DNA of 64,000 nt from Dicyema japonicum. Taxonomy: Eukaryota > Animalia > Dicyemida. The notes below the pieces were generated by a model. That model had not been told where the DNA came from. It worked only from the letters and a program-made list of their open reading frames with translations, and did not search any database. Of the stretch, positions 11,053 through 42,959 are shown one piece after another. Position numbers and translations under genes: made by a program. Position 1 is the first letter of the stretch. Every line of letters starts with the position of its first letter. The DNA is taken from positions 186,001-250,000 of the forward strand of contig RDEW01000052.1 in assembly GCA_011109175.1 (NCBI GenBank). Direction: 5' to 3'.

Positions 11053-12745
11053 TCACTCGATATGAATTGATTTTATTGCCGATTTATATAATTCTATATT
11101 GCACAAAATAACAACATTGTAATTCCTTCGAATAATCTCCGCATATAAATGGATCTTTTTCATATTAGATTGTAAGCACACATTCTCAATTTTCATAATA
11201 ATGTTATTAGAAATAAACATTTCCATAATTTCTGGTTCTATTATAAAATATGATATAACGATATCTGTTTGTAATTTCAGCGCATTCCCACATAACCCAT
11301 AGCCAAATTCGTTCATCTGTGTTCACGTTTAATAAATTTATCTTTGAAGTAATAGTTCTTAATATAGAAATTAGGAAATAACCTAATATCGTAATCAGGT
11401 TCGTCACGCCAAGTAAGATTTTTTATAAAAAGAGCAAATTTATTGAGAATCGGTTCACATGAATTCAAATCGCTAAAATCAGAATTCATAAAAATAGGTA
11501 AAAAATCATTTGGATCACTTAATATCTGGCAGATACAACTCAATATGGAATAGACTACGTCACTAGAACAGTTAGCGTGATCAATGTCCCTTTTCGATAA
11601 AACAACAAATTTACAATATAAAATTTATTAGACCATCAGTTCTTAGTAAATATCTGGAATTTGGGCATTTAGCAATATAATGGATAATTTTAATGACGGG
11701 AACTAATATATAATCGCAATCAGGAGGGGATACAGAATATCTTTCGAAAAAATAATAAATATAATAAATTCCACTATAATCTAAAAACAAATTCATATTT
11801 TTTCATTTTCGTCTAACAAATATATTTCAAATACCTAGAAGAACGCTCAACAAATCAAATTTGATAGCATCACTGAAGTCCTCTGTTTTAAAATGTTCAA
11901 CACATAACTAAAATTATTTTGTTATATGAACTTTGACAAGTCCTTCAGAATAAGCAACATAGGCTAGATGATCCATACTCATATTTTTTACGATTGATTT
12001 AAGATCAGTCGGAATACATTGATAATAGTGATGAGGTTTCATTAACATAATTGTAAGGGCAGGTAGCTAAAATAAGAATTAACAAACAAAAATTGATTTC
12101 TCCCACGGTTTAAAATCATTCAAAAGATAAATAAACGGCTAAAAATCAAATAACAGGTAATAATACATATACTTTATATATATTCGAAAAAATCTCAAGA
12201 AAAATATCAAAAATAAAACTATTTATGAAATATACACATACCAAATATTAGCATAAGAAATCGGTGGCTGTTTGACTATTCTCATTAAAATTTCCCTGAT
12301 GTAAAAATTTTAAAATACATTAATAGATTTTGAAAATCATAATCATAATCTACATACAGATGCACAAACTAAATATATATTTCTAAAATACTTTCAAAAA
12401 TGGTTTTAATAAATGATTCTTTTCTGTTGAAACAATCCTTCTTAGAGTAATATTTGATAAATTTGGATAAACTTGAATCATCTTAACAACGTCCTTAACT
12501 TCAACATCTTCACGAGTCAATTCAATGTAAAAAACGTCTTTCTGAACTACATCCGGAATCCTATATAAATTCGAATGTTGAAGAAATAAATCTTTCTCAT
12601 GTCGTGAAATCAAATATTTCAGTTCACTAAGTATTCTTTTAGAAAACATTTTTTTAGACTTGTTGTTTAATTTTGTATATTTTTGTTCATTAAAGTTTGC
12701 TCGAATATTATTAATGCATAACGCGTATAATGAAGGTGTTTCCAT
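11053..12745 (-). pseudogene. BC-box/LRR-like gene, copy A, with ~663-bp internal deletion and frameshifts
   Basis: METPSLYALCINNI start; ORF pieces at 12383-12745, 11611-11796, 11313-11543 and 11053-11316 match the U1-U3 genes. Confidence 0.7.
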
Positions 12746-30733: not shown

Positions 30734-31405
30734 TCAGTTGAGGAAGCCTGCTGCGTGGATTGCGAACGAGTTCCCTCGGAGTATGGCTATTCGATCTTTT
30801 GTCTTAGCCATAACCCTTCTCGTTGATCCCTTTTCTTTCTGGCAAGCAATCCTCCGAGTTCTTGCAAGAATTCAGCCGTCATTGGACCAACGGCTCCCGA
30901 TGATTCGGTCGCAACAGGAGTAAATCGGTAGCGATCCCAGAGGCAAGAATATTTCTTGATTTTTAGGTTTTCCGCGGTCGAAGCAGCTGCTCCAGGTGTC
31001 TGAACAGATTTAAAAATGTTCGTGCTTGAGAACGTGTCTATGCAAGTTGCGTCCCAGACCAAAGATCTTCCAGACATGAAGGGGAAAAGGGTCATCCCGT
31101 CAGGACTCTTCCCATCTCATCGATCAAGACCCACTGGTTCAAGCTGTGCTGGGAAGCCTGAAGCCTTCAGAGCTCTGACGATCACATCATTCAGAGCGGC
31201 ATGACGTGGTCCCTTCCGGAGCTTCTTCTGCAGGACAGCCGGTGCAAACCTTTCGCATCGACTGTTTTCCCGCATCGGCATCGTGCTCTTGGCAAACGTC
31301 TAGTCCCAGCCTTTGTCCGATTCCAATCCTCAAAGAATCGTCGTCCAAAAAAGTCCCGAGGTTTGGGCAAGGTATTGCACCAAGCCATGCTCCAAGCCAT
31401 GCTCC
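30734..31405 (-). mobile_element. 5'-truncated CRE-type non-LTR retrotransposon (CCHC + RLE); its 3' UTR and poly(A) lie at ~30358-30382
   Basis: [58 protein letters not shown] and IAILRGNS...stop. Absent from copies A and C. Confidence 0.88.
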
Positions 31406-32193
31406 ATTTTATTTTTTGGAAAAATAAAATTGAAAAATAAGTAAAGTATTAAAATACTTAGTTTTTCATTTATAAATTGTTTCTTAATAATAATTAATTT
31501 AAATTATTTAAAAATTATTCCCCCATAAATGGGACAAGACAGAGCTAAGATTGTGAAGATTACTTTGTTTAGTCAAGATGGCTTTTATTTAAATAAGTAA
31601 TCAAATTGAGATTTTTTTCAAAAAGTTTACGAATCCATCGATTTAAAGTTTGGTTAAATAATTCCATTTGACCCAGGAACTCTTGATCTCGGACGACTAA
31701 TTTCAGTAGAACATTAAACTCTTCATTGGGAATTCATACAATCATTTTTAAATTCTGGAAACGATTATAGTTGCCTTTATGGAAACAAGAGATTGTTACG
31801 AGAACGTGTCTCGATAATTTGTTCAGAAGTCGTGGTTAAGCAAATTGTAAGTGCTTTTAAGAAATAACTAACTTTACAAAAAATTTATAAGTAGTAGAAG
31901 CTCGTCAGTAACTCAATTCCCATCTACCTATTTAATCGGTTCCAACTTAAAAAGGAGACGGTAACTCCATGACCGAAATTCCATACTAAGAAACGATTAC
32001 TCACTGGCAAAAAGATTCGGCATGGATTTCAGATTTTTGACAATATCCTTTGATCACTACTCGGATAATTCTTCTAATTTGAGCCTTCAAAAGCAACCAA
32101 TTAGTCTTAGTTTAACTCTGATTTAAAGAATAATTTTATCAATTTAATTTATTAACTGATCTTTGTTTATTAGTAAAATTATTAATTAACGGA

Positions 32194-34547
32194 TCACTCG
32201 ATATGAATTGATTTTATTGCCGATTTATATAATTCTATATTACAAAAAATAACAACATTGTAATTCCTTCGAATAATCTCCGCATATAAATGGATCTTTT
32301 TCATATTAGATTGTAAGCACACATTCTCAATTTTCATAATAATGTTATTAGAAATAAACATTTCCATAATTTCTGGTTCTATTATAAAATAAGATATAAC
32401 GATATATGTGTGCAAGTTTAGCGCAGTCCCACATAATCCATAGCCAAATTCGTTCATCTATGTTCACGTTTAATAAATTTATCTTAGAAGTAATAGTTCT
32501 TAATATAGAAATTATGAAATAACCTAATATCGTAATCAGGATCGTAACACCAAGGATTAATTGTTATAAAAAGAGCAAATTTATTAAGAATGGGTTCACA
32601 TGGATTCAAATCGCTAAAATCAGAATTCATAAAAATAGGTAAAAAATCATTTGGATCACTTAATATCTGGCAGATACAACTCAATATGGAATAGACTACG
32701 TCACTAGAACAGTTAGCGTGATCAATGTCCCTTTTCGATAAAACAACAAATTTACAATATAAAATTTTATTAGACCATCAGTTCTTAGTAAATATCTGGA
32801 ATTTGGGCATTTAGCAATATAATGGATAATTTTAATGACGGGAACTAATATATAATCGCAATCAGGAGGGGATACAGAATATCTTTCGAAAAAATAATAA
32901 ATATAATAAATTCCACTATAATCTAAAAACAAATTCATATTTTTTCATTTTCGTCTAACAAATATATTTCAAATACCTAGAAGAACGCTCAACAAATCAA
33001 ATTTGATAGCATCACTGAAGTCCTCTGTTTTAAAATGTTCAACACATAACTAAAATAATATTGGTATATGAACTTTGATAAGTCCTTCAGAATAGGCAAC
33101 ATAGGCTAGAAAATCCATACTCATATTTTTTACGATTGATTTAATATCAATCGGAATATATTGATAATGGTGATGAGGTTTCATTAACAGAATTGTAAGG
33201 GCAGGTAGCTAAAATAATAATTAACAAACAAAAATTGATATCTCCCACGGTTTAAAATCATTCAAAAGATAAACAATCGGCTAAAAATCAGATATCAGAT
33301 AGTAATACATATACTTTATATATATTCGAAAAAATCTCAAGAAAAGTATCAAAAATAAAACTATTGATGAAATATACTCATACCAAATATTAAAATAAGA
33401 ATTCGGAGCCTGATTGACTATTCTCATTAAAATCTCCCTCGTGTAAAAATATTAAAATACATTAAATGATATTGAAAATCAAAATCATAATCTACATACA
33501 GATGCATAAACAAAATAATTATTTCTAAAAAACTTTCAAAAATGTTTTTATTAAATTTTCATTCAATTTGCATTTATTTTACAAATGTAATCAATGGTGT
33601 TTCTCAATAGTTTGTCCTTATTATCGAAATGTAAGACAGAAATAACATAATTATTCATAATTGATTGCTCGTCATTCTGCATTATTTAGAAAATATACAG
33701 AATCGCTAATATTTTTACTGAAATGTAAAATTTTACGATAGTGAAATTTTTTAAATCCAATTTTTTTGATTTGGCTAGAATTATTCAAATCAATAACTTT
33801 ATTAACTTTTTTAGTATTTTTCTTTTAATTAAATATCCAGATAAATTCACGTAAGTAAGATTCTTGGCTTTTTCGAAAAGAGAAATGAAATTACAATCAT
33901 ATCCATATATTTCTCCATCACTTGTATGTATGAAATGTCTAAATTTGAGATAAAATCAACCTTCAAAGAATCTGGATTGTTTAAGTTTGTAATAAATTTA
34001 TTAAAATTTGGAATTATGACGTCGTGAAAATTTATGCGTTCCAGTTTTTCTATTATATTTAGTGTTCTGTTATAAATAGTCGTTGTGCTATTGACTCCAA
34101 GAAGGGAGATAAACTTCAATTTTTTAAATCCAGTAATGAATAGTTGATGCAGCAAATCTGGGTCATCATAAAACCAGAGTGAAAATGATTTGACCTCATT
34201 CTGTAAAAATGGCAGTAAAAGATTCTTTTCTGATGAAACAATCCTTTTTAGTGTGATATTTGATAAATTTGGATAAACTTGAATCATCTTAACAACGTCC
34301 TTAACTTCAACATCTTCACGAGTCAATTCAATGTAAAAAACGTTTTTCTGAATTACATCTAGAATCCTATATAAACTCGAATGTTGAAGAAATAAATCTT
34401 TCTCATGTCGTGAAATCAAATATTTCAGTTCACTAAGGATTCTTTTAGAAAACATTTTTTTAGACTTGTTTAATTTTGTAATTTTTGTTCATTAAAGTTT
34501 GCTCGAATATTATTAATGCATAACGCGTATAATGAAGGTGTTTCCAT
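32194..34547 (-). pseudogene. BC-box/LRR-like gene U1 (frameshifted)
   Basis: ATG at 34547, 202-aa ORF 33847-34455 and shared C-terminal ORFs. Confidence 0.7.
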
Positions 34548-35623
34548 TTAATAAGTTGAATATATTGTATGACCTATAAATTTTATTTATTTTTTTATTT
34601 GAATTACATAATTTTTAATAATATTTTTTTATGAAAAAAATAATTATTTGTACTCAGCAATGTTCTATTATTTATATATAAGTGCGAAATCACCGTGAAA
34701 TGTCAGGAATGTTCCAATACCTTCTATGATTGATAAGCCAACCTTTCGATTTTAGATGTGAAAGTACGATTATCGCATAGTGGTCCTCTCACTGACATGA
34801 ATGACCCTTCGAAACATACGAGAATTACATTCAGTGGGTCAGACCAACTAATTTCTCAGACTTCACGCAGAAATAATGGATAGTACGCACGTCAAGAAGG
34901 GTGAGAATGCTAAAAACATTGCAGGATCATTCTTCATTTTTAGTGCGATATAAAGGAGCCAAGAAAAATCTTGAACAATAATGTTAATTTTCATGTGAGA
35001 AAGCAGATATCATTGATAGTCGTTTTTCGACATAACACGTTATGATTATTTTACAAAAAATATTTTCCAATGTCAGAATTGGCAAATTTAGAAACATTAC
35101 TTTATATGGATGTTTTTGAATAACACTACCATCTTCTCGTTCTAGATCAATCAATCCTGTGGCAGATAATTCTTTAACATGATATGTGAATGTATCAATG
35201 TGTACGTTTAAGCAACTTTTTCGTGTTTTTTTATTATTATCAAGATAGACCTTTATAAAAACTCGACCACCGAATACTGGACAGAATTATAGGAACTTGT
35301 AATTTCTTGAATTATGTACATCCATTTGAAATTCAAATTTTTAAAATTATGTCTTTATTGCACTTGACATCTGCGTTGCCGATTTACTCTTTAGAGATCT
35401 TGTCCAGCAAAATTTGGAAAAGGCATACAACCTAACCAAAAGCGAGCAAAAATTTTATTTCAGTATTTGGACAATATTCATCGATCACTACTCGGATACT
35501 TGTTCATTTTGAGCCTTCAGAACCAACCAATTAGTCTTAGTTTAACTCTGATTTAACGAATAATTTTATCAATTTAATTTATTAATTGATCTTTGTTTAT
35601 TAGTAAAATTATTAATTAACTAA

Positions 35624-37980
35624 TCACTCGATATGAATTGATTTTATTGCCGATTTATATAATTCTATGCTACAAAAAATAACAACATTGTATTTCCTTC
35701 GAATAATCTCCGCATATAAATGGATCTTTTTCATATTAGATTGTAAGCACACATTCTCAATTTTCATAATAATGTTATTAGAAATAAACATTTCCATAAT
35801 TTCTGGTTCTATTATAAAATAAAATATAACGATATATGTGTGCAAGTTTAGCGCAGTCCCACATAATCCATAGCCAAATTCGTTCATCTATGTTCACGTT
35901 TAATAAATTTATCTTAGAAGTAATAGTTCTTAATATAGAAATTATGAAATAACCTAATATCGTAATCAGGATCGTAACACCAAGGATTAATTGTTATAAA
36001 AAGAGCAAATTTATTAAGAATGGGTTCACATGGATTCAAATCGCTAAAATCAGAATTCATAAAAATAGGTAAAAAATCATTTGGATCACTTAATATCTGG
36101 CAGATACAACTCAATATGGAATAGACTACGTCACTAGAACAGTTAGCGTGATCAATGTCCCTTTTCGATAAAACAACAAATTTACAATATAAAATTTATT
36201 AGACCATCAGTTCTTAGTAAATATCTGGAATTTGGGCATTTAGCAATATAATGGATAATTTTAATGACGGGAACTAATATATAATCGCAATCAGGAGGGG
36301 ATACAGAATATCTTTCGAAAAAATAATAAATATAATAAATTCCACTATAATCTAAAAACAAATTCATATTTTTTTCATTTTCGTCTAACAAATATATTTC
36401 AAATACCTAGAAGAACGCTCAACAAATCAAATTTGATAGCATCACTGAAGTCCTCTGTTTTAAAATGTTCAACACATAACTAAAATTATTTTGTTATATG
36501 AACTTTGACAAGTCCTTCAGAATAAGCAACATAGGCTAGATGATCCATACTCATATTTTTTACGATTGATTTAAGATCAGTCGGAATACATTGATAATAG
36601 TGATGAGGTTTCATTAACATAATTGTAAGGGCAGGTAGCTAAAATAAGAATTAACAAACAAAAATTGATTTCTCCCACGGTTTAAAATCATTCAAAAGAT
36701 AAATAAACGGCTAAAAATCAAAATAACAGGTAATAATACATATACTTTTATATATTTCGAAAAAATCTCAAGAAAAATATCAAAAATAAAACTATTTATG
36801 AAATATACACATACCAAATATTAGCATAAGAAATCGGTGGCTGTTTGACTATTCTCATTAAAATTTCCCTGATGTAAAAATTTTAAAATACATTAATAGA
36901 TTTTGAAAATCATAATCATAATCTACATACAGATGCACAAACTAAATATATATTTCTAAAATACTTTCAAAAATGGTTTTAATAAATTTTCATTCAGTTT
37001 GCATTTTATATAACGAATGTAAGTAATTGCGTTTCCCAATAGTTTGTCTTTATTATCGAAATGTAAAACAGAAATAACATAATTATTAATAATTGATTGA
37101 TCATCATTCTAAATTTTTATAAAATATACAGATTCGCTTATATTTTTACTGAAATGTAAAATTTGACGATGTTGAAATTTTTTAAATCCCATTTTTCTGA
37201 TTTGGCTTGAATTATTCAAATCAATTACTTTGTTAACTTTTTTAGTATTTTTCTTTCAATTAAATATCCAGATAAATTAACGTAAGTAAGATTCTTGGCT
37301 TTTTCGAAAAGAGAAATGAAATTACAATCATATCCATTTATTTCTCCATCACTTGTATGTATGAAATGTCTAAATTTAAGATAAAATCAACTTCAAAGAC
37401 TCTGGATTGTTTATGTTTTTAATAAATTCTTTAAAATTTGAAATTATGACGTCGTGAAAATTTATGCGTTCCAGTTTTTCTATTATATTTAGTGTTCTGT
37501 TGTAAATAGTCGTTGTTCTATTGACTCCAAGGAGGGAGATAAACTTCAATTTTTTAAATCCAGTCATGAATAGTTATGTAGCAAATCTGGGTCATCATAA
37601 AACCAGAGTGAAAATGATTTGACCTCATTCTGTGAAAATGGCAGTAAAGGATTCTCTTCTGATGAAACAATCCTTCTTAGTGTAATATTTGATAAATTTG
37701 GATAAACTTGAATCATCTTAACAACGTCCTTAACTTCAACATTTTCACGAGTTAATTCAATGTAAAAAACGTCTTTCTGAACTACATCCGGAATCCTATA
37801 TAAATTCGAATGTTGAAGAAATAAATCTTTCTCATGTCGTAAAATCAAATATTTCAGTTCATTAAGTATTCTTTTAGAAAACATTTTTTTAGACTTGTTG
37901 TTTAATTTTGTAAATTTTTGTTCATTAAAGTTTGCTCGAATATTATTAATGCATAACGCGTATAATGAAGGTGTTTCCAT
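35624..37980 (-). pseudogene. BC-box/LRR-like gene U2 (frameshifted)
   Basis: METPSLYALCINNI ORF 37564-37980 and downstream pieces. Confidence 0.7.
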
Positions 37981-39056
37981 TTAATAAGTTGAATATATTG
38001 TATGACCTATAAATTTTATTTATTTTTTTATTTGAATTACATAATTTTTAATAATATTTTTTTATGAAAAAAATAATTATTTGTACTCAGCAATGTTCTA
38101 TTATTTATATATAAGTGCGAAATCACCGTGAAAATGTCAGGAATGTTCCAATACCTTCTATGATTGATAAGCCAACCTTTCGATTTTAGATGAAAGTACG
38201 ATTATCGCATAGTGGTCCTCTCACTGACATGAATGACCCTTCGAAACATACGAGAATTACATTCAGTGGGTCAGACCAACTAATTTCTCAGACTTCACGC
38301 AGAAATAATGGATAGTACGCACGTCAAGAAGGGTGAGAATGCTAAAAACATTGCAGGATCATTCTTCATTTTTAGTGCGATATAAGGAAGCCAAGAAAAA
38401 TCTTGAACAATAATGTTAATTTTCATGTGAGGAAAGCAGATATCATTGATAGTCGTTTTTCGACATAACACGTTATGATTATTTTACAAAAAATATTTTC
38501 CAATGTCAGAATTGGCAAATTTAGAAACATTACTTTATATGGATGTTTTTGAATAACACTACCATCTTCTCGTTCTAGATCAATCAATCCTGTGGCAGAT
38601 AATTCTTTAACATGATATGTGAATGTATCAATGTGTACGTTTAAGCAACTTTTTCGTGTTTTTTTATTATTATCAAGATAGACCTTTATAAAAACTCGAC
38701 CACCGAATACTGGACAGAATTATAGGAACTTGTAATTTCTTGAATTATGTACATCCATTTGAAATTCAAATTTTTAAAATTATGTCTTTATTGCACTTGA
38801 CATCTGCGTTGCCGATTTACTCTTTAGAGATCTTGTCCAGCAAAATTTGGAAAAGGCATACAACCTAACCAAAAGCGAGCAAAAATTTTATTTCAGTATT
38901 TGGACAATATTCATCGATCACTACTCGGATACTTGTTCATTTTGAGCCTTCAGAACCAACCAATTAGTCTTAGTTTAACTCTGATTTAACGAATAATTTT
39001 ATCAATTTAATTTATTAATTGATCTTTGTTTATTAGTAAAATTATTAATTAACTAA

Positions 39057-41413
39057 TCACTCGATATGAATTGATTTTATTGCCGATTTATATAATTCTA
39101 TGCTACAAAAAATAACAACATTGTATTTCCTTCGAATAATCTCCGCATATAAATGGATCTTTTTCATATTAGATTGTAAGCACACATTCTCAATTTTCAT
39201 AATAATGTTATTAGAAATAAACATTTCCATAATTTCTGGTTCTATTATAAAATAAAATATAACGATATATGTGTGCAAGTTTAGCGCAGTCCCACATAAT
39301 CCATAGCCAAATTCGTTCATCTATGTTCACGTTTAATAAATTTATCTTAGAAGTAATAGTTCTTAATATAGAAATTATGAAATAACCTAATATCGTAATC
39401 AGGATCGTAACACCAAGGATTAATTGTTATAAAAAGAGCAAATTTATTAAGAATGGGTTCACATGGATTCAAATCGCTAAAATCAGAATTCATAAAAATA
39501 GGTAAAAAATCATTTGGATCACTTAATATCTGGCAGATACAACTCAATATGGAATAGACTACGTCACTAGAACAGTTAGCGTGATCAATGTCCCTTTTCG
39601 ATAAAACAACAAATTTACAATATAAAATTTATTAGACCATCAGTTCTTAGTAAATATCTGGAATTTGGGCATTTAGCAATATAATGGATAATTTTAATGA
39701 CGGGAACTAATATATAATCGCAATCAGGAGGGGATACAGAATATCTTTCGAAAAAATAATAAATATAATAAATTCCACTATAATCTAAAAACAAATTCAT
39801 ATTTTTTTCATTTTCGTCTAACAAATATATTTCAAATACCTAGAAGAACGCTCAACAAATCAAATTTGATAGCATCACTGAAGTCCTCTGTTTTAAAATG
39901 TTCAACACATAACTAAAATTATTTTGTTATATGAACTTTGACAAGTCCTTCAGAATAAGCAACATAGGCTAGATGATCCATACTCATATTTTTTACGATT
40001 GATTTAAGATCAGTCGGAATACATTGATAATAGTGATGAGGTTTCATTAACATAATTGTAAGGGCAGGTAGCTAAAATAAGAATTAACAAACAAAAATTG
40101 ATTTCTCCCACGGTTTAAAATCATTCAAAAGATAAATAAACGGCTAAAAATCAAATAACAGGTAATAATACATATACTTTATATATATTCGAAAAAATCT
40201 CAAGAAAAATATCAAAAATAAAACTATTTATGAAATATACACATACCAAATATTAGCATAAGAAATCGGTGGCTGTTTGACTATTCTCATTAAAATTTCC
40301 CTGATGTAAAAATTTTAAAATACATTAATAGATTTTGAAAATCATAATCATAATCTACATACAGATGCACAAACTAAATATATATTTCTAAAATACTTTC
40401 AAAAATGGTTTTAATAAATTTTCATTCAGTTTGCATTTTATATAACGAATGTAAGTAATTGCGTTTCCCAATAGTTTGTCTTTATTATCGAAATGTAAAA
40501 CAGAAATAACATAATTATTAATAATTGATTGATCATCATTCTAAATTTTTATAAAATATACAGATTCGCTTATATTTTTACTGAAATGTAAAATTTGACG
40601 ATGTTGAAATTTTTTAAATCCCATTTTTCTGATTTGGCTTGAATTATTCAAATCAATTACTTTGTTAACTTTTTTAGTATTTTTCTTTCAATTAAATATC
40701 CAGATAAATTAACGTAAGTAAGATTCTTGGCTTTTTCGAAAAGAGAAATGAAATTACAATCATATCCATTTATTTCTCCATCACTTGTATGTATGAAATG
40801 TCTAAATTTAAGATAAAATCAACTTCAAAGACTCTGGATTGTTTATGTTTTTAATAAATTCTTTAAAATTTGAAATTATGACGTCGTGAAAATTTATGCG
40901 TTCCAGTTTTTCTATTATATTTAGTGTTCTGTTGTAAATAGTCGTTGTTCTATTGACTCCAAGGAGGGAGATAAACTTCAATTTTTTAAATCCAGTCATG
41001 AATAGTTTATGTAGCAAATCTGGGTCATCATAAAACCAGAGTGAAAATGATTTGACCTCATTCTGTGAAAATGGCAGTAAAGGATTCTCTTCTGATGAAA
41101 CAATCCTTCTTAGTGTAATATTTGATAAATTTGGATAAACTTGAATCATCTTAACAACGTCCTTAACTTCAACATTTTCACGAGTTAATTCAATGTAAAA
41201 AACGTCTTTCTGAACTACATCCGGAATCCTATATAAATTCGAATGTTGAAGAAATAAATCTTTCTCATGTCGTAAAATCAAATATTTCAGTTCATTAAGT
41301 ATTCTTTTAGAAAACATTTTTTTAGACTTGTTGTTTAATTTTGTAAATTTTTGTTCATTAAAGTTTGCTCGAATATTATTAATGCATAACGCGTATAATG
41401 AAGGTGTTTCCAT
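39057..41413 (-). pseudogene. BC-box/LRR-like gene U3 (frameshifted; longest N-terminal ORF, 201 aa)
   Basis: SLYALCINNI, then the LxxLxL-like units NLSNITL, KLKFISL, KLERINF and, after a frameshift, NLTYVNLSG. Confidence 0.72.
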
Positions 41414-42959
41414 TTAATAAGTTGAATATATTGTATGACCTATAAATTTTATTTATTTTTTTATTTGAATTACATAATTTTTAATAATATTTTTTTATGA
41501 AAAAAATAATTATTTGTACTCAGCAGCAATGTTCTATTATTTATATATAAGTGCGAAATCACCGTGAAAATGTCAGGAATGTTCCAATACCTTCTATGAT
41601 TGATAAGCCAACCTTTCGATTTTAGATGTGAAAGTACGATTATCGCATAGTGGTCCTCTCACTGACATGAATGACCCTTCGAAACATACGAGAATTACAT
41701 TCAGTGGGTCAGACCAACTAATTTCTCAGACTTCACGCAGAAATAATGGATAGTACGCACGTCAAGAAGGGTGAGAATGCTAAAAACATTGCAGGATCAT
41801 TCTTCATTTTTAGTGCGATATAAGGAGCCAAGAAAAATCTTGAACAATAATGTTAATTTTCATGTGAGGAAAGCAGATATCATTGATAGTCGTTTTTCGA
41901 CATAACACGTTATGATTATTTTACAAAAAATATTTTCCAATGTCAGAATTAGCAAATTTAGTAACATTACTTTATATGATGACTCATTAACGTATTTTAT
42001 ATAAAATAAATATACCATTACATAAATCACTTGGTAAATTTACCTTAATAGACTATCTGAAGTCTCTGAAGTATTTCTCAGATCGTTTATTAGATCTACG
42101 GGAAACAACCTGTTTTAATCATTTTTTTCATCTTAAAAATTATGTCATAGTCGTTTTTAATGTCATAGAAAATAGACAAATTTGTTCTCTCTAACGAAAG
42201 AAACAGATTGGATATCTATGTTGTTGGTTGTTCTGAGGTCCTGTGAGATGTTATTGTTTTCTAAAAAATTATTGATATTCGTCAGTTAATCTATCTGCAA
42301 CAACAGTAAGTTTTTCTCGCATCTGAGAACGGGCATTTTTTCTCTTCATGTTAGGGTTTCTTCAAACTCCCCACACTTCAAAAGTCCTTTATTACTATTT
42401 TCGGACCGTGATGATAAATTTTTATATTGATCCATAATGTGCTTATATTTGGTCATATTTCCCTGTGGACACTGTAAAAACCAAGTTCCATAGTTAGTGT
42501 ATACGGAATCGAGGATTTTTAATTCATACACTAATCCACTCTGCTTTTATTTTTTATTATTATAATTTGTTTTGTTTTAGTTCTTGAATCCTTGGTACGA
42601 ATGAACCATGGAACGAGGTGCCGTGACTGCTAACGTTCTGTCACTCGACCTATTCGTTCGTGTGTGGGGTCGTGGGAGGGGCATCAGGCCAAAATGAGGT
42701 CTTTGCTAGATCTGGTTGCGGCCACGTTATTAGTTAGTTTGTGTAACTTTGGTCTTTTTTGTTATTATTATTACCTAATTAGTTCAGTTACTATTAGTGA
42801 CATGGTGGACAGGTTGCCATTAAAATAAAGTTGTCATAATTAAACGAATTTTTTACGATAATAAATATTCAAATTATTTTTCAGTATTTCTTAATTTCGC
42901 TATTTTACGATTATGTGTGCTCAAATATTAGACTTTCTCTTCGCGGGGTCATCGTCGAC

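Follow-up and report, generated by a model that had tools for sequence, protein, structure and literature searches.

A tandemly repeated Dicyema japonicum gene with an N-terminal BC box as a probable member of an expanded ZYG11/ZER1-like receptor family

Introduction

We analysed a 64,000-nt stretch of the genome of the dicyemid Dicyema japonicum (assembly GCA_011109175.1, contig RDEW01000052.1, positions 186,001 to 250,000 of the forward strand; referred to here as the window, with positions counted from its first nucleotide) in which a gene encoding an N-terminal BC box followed by leucine-rich repeats (LRRs) is repeated in tandem. We consider it probable that the genes at this locus belong to a fast-evolving branch, specific to Dicyema and recently expanded, of the ZYG11/ZER1 substrate receptors of Elongin B/C–cullin–RING ligases. 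If the gene is expressed, as we infer, the first helix of the protein, which carries the BC box and the key residue L6, would plug into the parasite's own Elongin C, and the solenoids formed by the LRRs and by the armadillo (ARM) repeats that follow them would present substrate to the ligase for ubiquitylation. An earlier note, made from the letters of the window, had proposed an expanding family of Elongin C and cullin adaptors, and our computations lend support to this through the number of family loci, the homology to ZER1 and a predicted complex with Elongin C. An animal with approximately 5,000 genes would in this case keep about 32 seemingly intact members of a family that is held at one to three copies in other animals (the D. 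japonicum genome comprises 67.5 Mb in 377 scaffolds with ~5,000 genes; PMC6736024).

Gene copies and tiny introns

The window contains four copies of the gene, all on the minus strand and with ATGs at 12745, 34547, 37980 and 41413. As the earlier note had seen, the translated N-terminus (METPSLYALCINNIRANF) is identical in all four, and the start motif, found at four places in the window, was absent from all of 100 shuffled sequences. The copies had all been placed within 32040-41978, which is correct for the three tandem copies but not for the fourth, which is dispersed and lies 20 kb off. Each unit of the array consists of one gene copy and a spacer of ~1.07 kb, and the GC content of the array is 26–29% compared with 31–39% in the flanking sequence on both sides. 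The array and its copies are as follows.

32040-41978, no strand assigned: tandem array of ~2.9 units of 3.43 kb (direct-repeat families with a spacing of 3429-3438 bp and 81–100% identity).
32194-34547, minus strand: copy 1, decayed, with indels and a lost splice acceptor when compared with copy 3.
35624-37980, minus strand: copy 2, 99.7% identical to copy 3, with the frame broken in exon 1.
39057-41413, minus strand: copy 3, intact gene with 14 exons encoding 684 aa (intron-aware model refined with paralogues).
11053-12745, minus strand: copy 4, dispersed, without ~660 nt (most of exons 1–4).

Only copy 3 is intact, and copies 1, 2 and 4 carry genuine frameshifts or deletions. When sequences were read from an ATG and GT...AG stretches of 19–30 nt were allowed to be skipped, copy 3 could be read through for 2357 nt with 13 skips, compared with at most 592 nt for 40 random ATGs from the window. 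The resulting model runs for 2357 nt from ATG to stop and contains 13 GT–AG introns of 21–28 nt, leaving a 2055-nt reading frame and a 684-aa product, with all 26 splice dinucleotides intact (three of the boundaries were set from the intron positions of paralogues). A locus of ~2.35 kb encoding ~780 aa had been suggested before, and while this length agrees with ours, the product is shorter once the introns are removed.

40824-41413, 40661-40801, 40562-40637, 40397-40540, 40324-40373, 40247-40300 and 40172-40223, minus strand: copy 3 exons 1–7.
40093-40143, 39937-40071, 39840-39912, 39619-39817, 39387-39593, 39264-39361 and 39057-39241, minus strand: copy 3 exons 8–14.
Copy 3 intron lengths, in order: 22, 23, 21, 23, 23, 23, 28, 21, 24, 22, 25, 25 and 22 nt.

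Most of the apparent frameshifts are therefore tiny introns at positions common to paralogues and not sequencing errors, a reading the earlier note had allowed for: the breaks in copy 3 are introns, and real indels are found only in copies 1, 2 and 4. Approximately 12 intron positions, in the same phase, are common to 9–13 of 13 independently modelled paralogues, in which intron lengths are mostly 21–25 nt and vary by 1–2 nt from one paralogue to the next; as such differences would be frameshifts in coding sequence, they support the intron reading. When copies 1 and 3 are compared, the divergence of the introns is also twice that of the exons. Four public sequencing runs gave exact unitigs that span much of copy 3 and match 40659-40912 across intron 1 with no differences, so the sequence there is not an assembly slip. 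Introns of less than 30 bp have been published for D. japonicum, one of just two animal lineages in which they are known (PMC13644364), and a gene that looks frameshifted in this genome is usually an intact gene with introns of 21–25 nt. It should be noted that a ciliate-type alternative genetic code was also considered and then dropped, since the introns account for the stops.

Protein architecture and relationship to ZYG11 and ZER1

Folds, complexes and database searches were run exon by exon, and spliced models were compared by script alignment. The regions recognised in the copy 3 protein, and the single-copy gene with which it was compared, are listed here.

41372-41401, minus strand: BC box, residues 5–14 (SLYALCINNI), in the first predicted helix (consensus fit and conservation).
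41288-41314, minus strand: Cul2-box-like stretch, residues 34–42 (FSKRILNEL; alignment A1 and the consensus of PMC4878042).
40397-41206, minus strand: LRR solenoid region, from about residue 70, exons 1–4 (AlphaFold2 and structural matches).
39057-40373, minus strand: helical ARM-repeat region, exons 5–14, probably homologous to the ZER1-like C-terminal domain (profiles, fold and alignment with L062).
G000:C323:1896655-1900155: L062, single-copy ZER1-like gene (approximately L062:283 to 2725) with 14 tiny introns.

The AlphaFold2 (AF2) fold covers the first 196 residues, encoded by exon 1, with moderate confidence (mean predicted local distance difference test score, pLDDT, of 74.6) and predicts N-terminal helices at residues 6–16, 20–24 and 28–49, followed by alternating strands and helices from residue 73 (pLDDT 81–94 over residues 71–180). 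The top structural matches of this model are all LRR proteins, both in Foldseek (E values of at least 0.012) and among the top 50 rows of VIA (Z up to 9.8 over residues 55–196), these being modest scores. The LRR-like strings which the earlier note had picked out after the BC box are located in exons 1–2, and the LRR solenoid it suspected is borne out by the AF2 fold and the structural matches, with ARM repeats following it as in ZYG11 and ZER1. A hydropathy scan of the copy 3 protein found no signal-peptide-like or membrane segment (maximum 12-aa N-terminal hydropathy 0.79, maximum 19-aa hydropathy 1.41), in agreement with the absence of an obvious signal peptide noted earlier.

Among solved structures, the exon-11 profile matched ARMC4 (E = 1.7e-4) and ZER1 (E = 0.04), and a paralogue profile of 183 positions made from the open frames of six paralogues (A6) matched only ZER1 chains (E = 0.0018), with the next family at 0.13. 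Foldseek matched the predicted fold of a paralogue ARM piece to ARM proteins, among them ZER1 in many rows and ZYG11B in one (with a pLDDT of just 62 and E values of 0.006–0.1), and Zer-1-like clusters are listed in the Atlas for both halves of the protein. No match among solved structures was obtained with the exon-12, exon-13, exon-14 or A7 profiles, and the exon-1 profile returned only chance-level DDX6 rows there. The Pfam family PF22964 (ZER1-like_2nd; cut-off 27 bits) has 34 sub-threshold matches in the genome which are mostly at family loci; for at least 28, an exon-1 locus was identified ~2 kb upstream, and a few are unplaced.

On the same Pfam family, three colinear exons of L062 score 29.5, 25.7 and 23.5 bits, and the copy 3 protein aligns with spliced L062 over residues 4–643 with 28% identity (E = 7e-56). 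L062 is probably an orthodox ZER1/ZYG11 orthologue and the source of the expanded family. ZYG11B, ZER1 (ZYG11BL) and Caenorhabditis elegans ZYG-11 are substrate receptors of Cul2–RING ligases (CRL2; PMC13201589).

The BC box and the Cul2-box-like stretch

The published BC-box consensus is (S,T,P)LXXX(C,S,A)XXX-hydrophobic, and VHL-box proteins have a Cul2 box after it, with the consensus hydrophobic-PXX-hydrophobic-XXX-hydrophobic (PMC4878042). The match to the BC box claimed earlier for S5-L-Y-A-L-C10-I-N-N-I14 stands, as these residues fit the published form, and the conservation among paralogues that the note had proposed as a check is also seen. In an alignment of 25 paralogues with an intact exon 1 (A1), L6 and Y7 do not vary, S5 and C10 each reach a conservation of at least 90%, and 24 sequences have a hydrophobic residue at position 14, with the whole consensus present in 24 of the 25.

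The earlier note also saw no clear Cul2 or Cul5 box, which is right in so far as the proline of the Cul2 box is absent, but F34, I38 and L42 retain its three hydrophobic positions within residues 34–42, with serine in place of the consensus proline. Around these residues, M33 is invariant and R37 and E41 are at least 90% conserved in A1. The BC-box leucine and the FSKRI stretch are 28 residues apart, compared with 32 in ZYG11B, whose long connecting loop is reported to be a feature of the ZYG11 family only (PMC13201589).

Elongin C, cullins and the predicted complex

The parasite has its own Elongin C gene, and the whole BC-box pocket is encoded in the second exon.

L076:1292-1659 (G000:C112, ~1968.35-1968.72 kb), minus strand: Elongin C gene, two exons separated by one 26-nt GT–AG phase-2 intron.

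We modelled a complex in which the two Elongin C exons were supplied as separate chains with exon 1 of copy 3 as the partner (alignment A1 was not used). This complex had an interaction prediction score from aligned errors (ipSAE) of 0.61 (0.60–0.64 between runs) compared with 0.30 for the best control, with a contact agreement of at least 88% between runs and a partner pLDDT of at least 64; 51 of 78 solved complexes attained the ipSAE mark, as did two of 108 mismatched pairs. In the model, L6 contacts the equivalents of human Elongin C V73, Y76, L103, A107 and L110, while the equivalent of Elongin C L104 contacts Y7, C10, I11 and I14, and residues 33–35 and 37–38 (including F34, S35, R37 and I38) also touch Elongin C. 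The interface of ZYG11B with Elongin C is formed by L18, by L19, C22, L23 and L26, and by F50, P51 and V54 (PMC13201589). The copy 3 BC box is thus predicted to be placed in the canonical Elongin C pocket, much as in the ZYG11B interface.

The earlier note had asked whether the parasite encodes Elongin C and Cul2, and only the former was identified. Cullin-domain matches were found at five or more very diverged loci (L077 on C146, L078 on C360, L079 on C48, L080 on C179 and L081 on C113), and when compared with solved structures the C146 piece looks Cul1-like and the C360 piece Cul3-like, while for the C179 piece the sole row was Cullin-4B and not significant (E = 0.44). We also note a SKP1 gene elsewhere in the genome (L072, G000:C315:145.4-146.0 kb), recognised by a conserved C-terminal peptide and a Skp1_POZ match.

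Distribution and evolution of the family

When the genome was searched with exon 1, at least 147 matches were obtained; these fall at ~90 loci, of which ~32 have an open full-length exon 1 and many of the others carry stops, with at least 50 decayed family members. The family tree has three supported subclades, one of which includes the gene in the window, with L062 as a long-branched outgroup. Pairwise synonymous divergence (dS) among paralogues is low, at 0.08–0.4 in the closest pairs, and the median ratio of non-synonymous to synonymous divergence (dN/dS) in exon 1 of the intact paralogues is 0.45, while the pooled pN/pS in the ARM exons is 0.75 (exon 11), 0.58 (exon 12) and 0.47 (exon 13). 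By these sequence comparisons, the family appears to be recent and fast-evolving yet constrained.

Two seemingly intronless paralogues of 1613 aa and 443 aa (L064 on C99 and L065 on C52) were rejected as false frames in which assembly gaps (N runs) had been read as X, and we note that N runs are also found inside another family member (L036 on C17). The D. japonicum genome paper names other expanded families, and this one is not mentioned in its text or supplements (PMC6736024). We found no literature connecting dicyemids to ZYG11 or ZER1, and those papers containing both 'dicyem' and 'cullin' are, by their titles and abstracts, not about dicyemid ubiquitin ligases.

The substrate pocket

ZYG11B holds Gly/N-degrons by W522, N523, D526, N567 and E570 (PMC13201589). 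We mapped these positions by motif spacing (WNxTD and NxAE) in low-identity alignments, in which the copy 3 residues are S, V, D, Y and K, respectively, so that four of the five are replaced and D526 is kept, and L062 retains all five. In the A6 paralogue profile, the D and N are kept, with Y for N523, K for E570 and W522 unaligned. The replacements in copy 3 mean that its targets probably differ from those of ZYG11B, and the expanded branch as a whole probably does not read Gly/N-degrons as ZYG11B does.

The fastest-evolving of these ARM exons (exon 11, compared with its neighbours above) is the one that carries the pocket. One could imagine from this that the expanded branch is a diversifying recognition repertoire and not a set of redundant ZER1 copies, with ligase receptors in an arms race against selfish elements, viruses or host-derived proteins, and we offer this as a rather doubtful suggestion. 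If true, such a repertoire would take up ~0.6% of the gene set (~32 of 5,012) of an animal whose genome ranks with the most reduced. Provided that they are active, the genes would also be a natural experiment in which a CRL2 receptor has been re-aimed, with the Elongin C handle held constant and the substrate pocket rebuilt, and this would be relevant to the use of ZYG11B as a degrader scaffold.

Decay and conversion in the array

Differences between the copies are unevenly distributed. Copy 1 has 1-nt indels at +66, +589, +974, +1605 and +1782, a 3-nt deletion at +78 and an intron-4 acceptor changed from AG to TG; it diverges from copy 3 by 4% in exons and 8% in introns, with 59 non-synonymous and 14 synonymous changes (a near neutral pattern), and has 57 differences from copy 3 in residues 1–430 and none in residues 431–661. 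The frameshift at +1605 is common to copies 1 and 4. Copy 2 has a 1-nt deletion at +405 (~37575, in exon 1) after which the frame stops at residue 138, but retains 26 of 26 splice dinucleotides and has one additional T in intron 7. In the spacers upstream of the tandem copies (34698-34953, 38130-38385 and 41568-41823), copies 1 and 3 have 100% identity, whereas the spacer of copy 2 is only 81% identical to that of copy 3. Such patchy identity along the copies and spacers looks like the result of gene conversion or unequal crossing-over, and as copies 1, 2 and 4 are pseudogenes, the array may be described as a birth-and-death cluster that would have been shaped by tandem duplication and gene conversion. 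Further family members are found on the same contig (G000:C326, positions counted along the contig) at 159177-159716 and 169767-170345, before the window, and at 254424-255010, 4.4 kb beyond its end, so the window is part of a larger cluster.

Other features were observed in and near the array. A 32-nt AT-rich unit is repeated 2.2 times 30–100 nt upstream of each tandem ATG (34576-34645, 38009-38078 and 41442-41511), where it may be part of the 5' untranslated region or of the promoter. The GC-richer stretch at 30787-31440, ~0.6 kb to the left of the array, has retrotransposon-like open frames and includes a 12-nt tandem repeat at 31376-31406.

Alternative explanations

A number of results weigh against placing the locus among the ZYG11/ZER1 receptors. 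The exons in the window match no Pfam family themselves, and the link to ZER1 is therefore made only through the alignment with L062; similarly, the profile of the N-terminal 196 aa had no convincing outside relative among 1.84 billion proteins (there was one marginal LRR giant, E = 6e-4), and PF25013 (LRR_Zer-1) misses the family, with one weak and unrelated match in the genome. As the N-terminal half has no convincing outside sequence match, membership is based on the ARM half and, transitively, on the homology to L062. None of the 25 paralogues has the Cul2-box proline, nor does L062, and no Cul2 or Cul5 was recognised among the pieces searched, which came from three of the five cullin loci listed above (C146, C360 and C179). 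The pass obtained by the predicted complex may only reflect the model's memory of solved BC-box complexes, and it indicates likeness and not binding. Finally, three of the four copies are broken, and the search of public runs matched four DNA-type runs from one study whose contigs had no joints of 21–28 nt, so they give no RNA support for splicing.

These last two results would also be expected if the whole array, including copy 3, were a non-functional and decaying repeat in which one open frame has been kept only through recent duplication. More than half of the family loci carry stops, the changes between copies 1 and 3 are near neutral, all the public runs containing the stretch are of DNA type, and as copies 2 and 3 differ by only 0.3%, there has been little time for copy 3 to decay. 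We nevertheless think this unlikely, as copy 3 retains a 2055-nt frame over 13 introns and all of its splice dinucleotides when random starts could be read for no more than 592 nt, ~32 loci have an open full-length exon 1, the median dN/dS between intact paralogues is below one, and the BC-box residues are held fixed across paralogues.

The remaining explanations accept a working protein but give it a different partner. The best structural matches of exon 1 are the LRR domains of FBXL2, FBXL5, FBXL17 and SKP2, and with SKP1 and a Cul1-like cullin in the genome, the protein might be an F-box-like adaptor binding SKP1 and Cul1 rather than Elongin C. However, the FBXL matches are limited to residues 55–196 and do not include the N-terminal helices, exon 1 has no F-box match in Pfam at E values up to 1, and the N-terminus conforms to the BC-box consensus and, with Elongin C as the modelled partner, docks with a score above the controls, while the ARM half is ZER1-like; we regard an FBXL-type adaptor as improbable. 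We give equally little credence to a SOCS-box-type receptor recruiting Cul5, or another cullin, in place of Cul2. The BC box is common to VHL-box and SOCS-box proteins (PMC4878042), and the loss of the Cul2-box proline and the lack of a Cul2 among the cullin pieces searched would both be in keeping with it, but there is no conserved proline-containing motif resembling the Cul5 box after the BC box in A1, the 28-residue spacing is near to that of ZYG11B with its family-specific loop (PMC13201589), and the overall architecture is of the ZYG11/ZER1 type.

The earlier note had further raised the possibility that the proteins are directed at the host, as secreted mimics that hijack the Elongin B/C ligase of the cephalopod. 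This draws on the analogy with viral BC-box proteins (PMC4878042) and on the parasitic lifestyle, and our results provide no support for it: the protein has no signal-peptide-like or membrane segment and its BC box, starting at residue 5, occupies the place that a signal peptide would need, the parasite has an Elongin C of its own which is predicted to bind, and the family probably arose from a ZER1-like gene of the ordinary animal type. We consider it highly improbable, and the least probable of the explanations discussed here. A Dicyema branch of the ZYG11/ZER1 receptors acting with the parasite's own Elongin C remains the explanation we prefer.

Comparison with known systems

Several known receptor families share part of the architecture predicted for the Dicyema protein. 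Yeast Rad7, which is bound to Elc1, the yeast Elongin C, is an LRR protein with a BC/SOCS-type box and was among the structural matches (5zb2_A, Z 9.0), but this match is limited to the LRRs, an ARM domain is lacking in Rad7, and the two showed no relationship in sequence. The FBXL proteins (SKP2, FBXL2, FBXL5 and FBXL17) have the nearest LRR geometry among solved structures (Z 8.0–9.8) and also have a three-helix adaptor module followed by LRRs; in contrast, the Dicyema gene has no F-box, its predicted adaptor is Elongin C and not SKP1, and it has the additional ARM domain. The PRAME family likewise consists of VHL-box LRR receptors of Cul2 ligases (PMC4878042). PRAME proteins lack an ARM domain, whereas in the Dicyema protein this follows the LRRs, and no sequence similarity between the two was detected. 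PRAME has also undergone lineage-specific expansion into tandem and fast-evolving arrays.

The closest resemblance is to ZYG11B, ZER1 and C. elegans ZYG-11. There are differences, as Dicyema has ~90 loci compared with one to three genes, the Cul2-box proline is replaced, and the N-terminal half is too diverged for profiles to find relatives outside the family. Nevertheless, the ARM half appears to be homologous by sequence, the predicted contacts with Elongin C match those solved for ZYG11B, and the BC-box helix, long spacer, Cul2-box-like stretch, LRR solenoid and ARM domain are found in the same order (PMC13201589).

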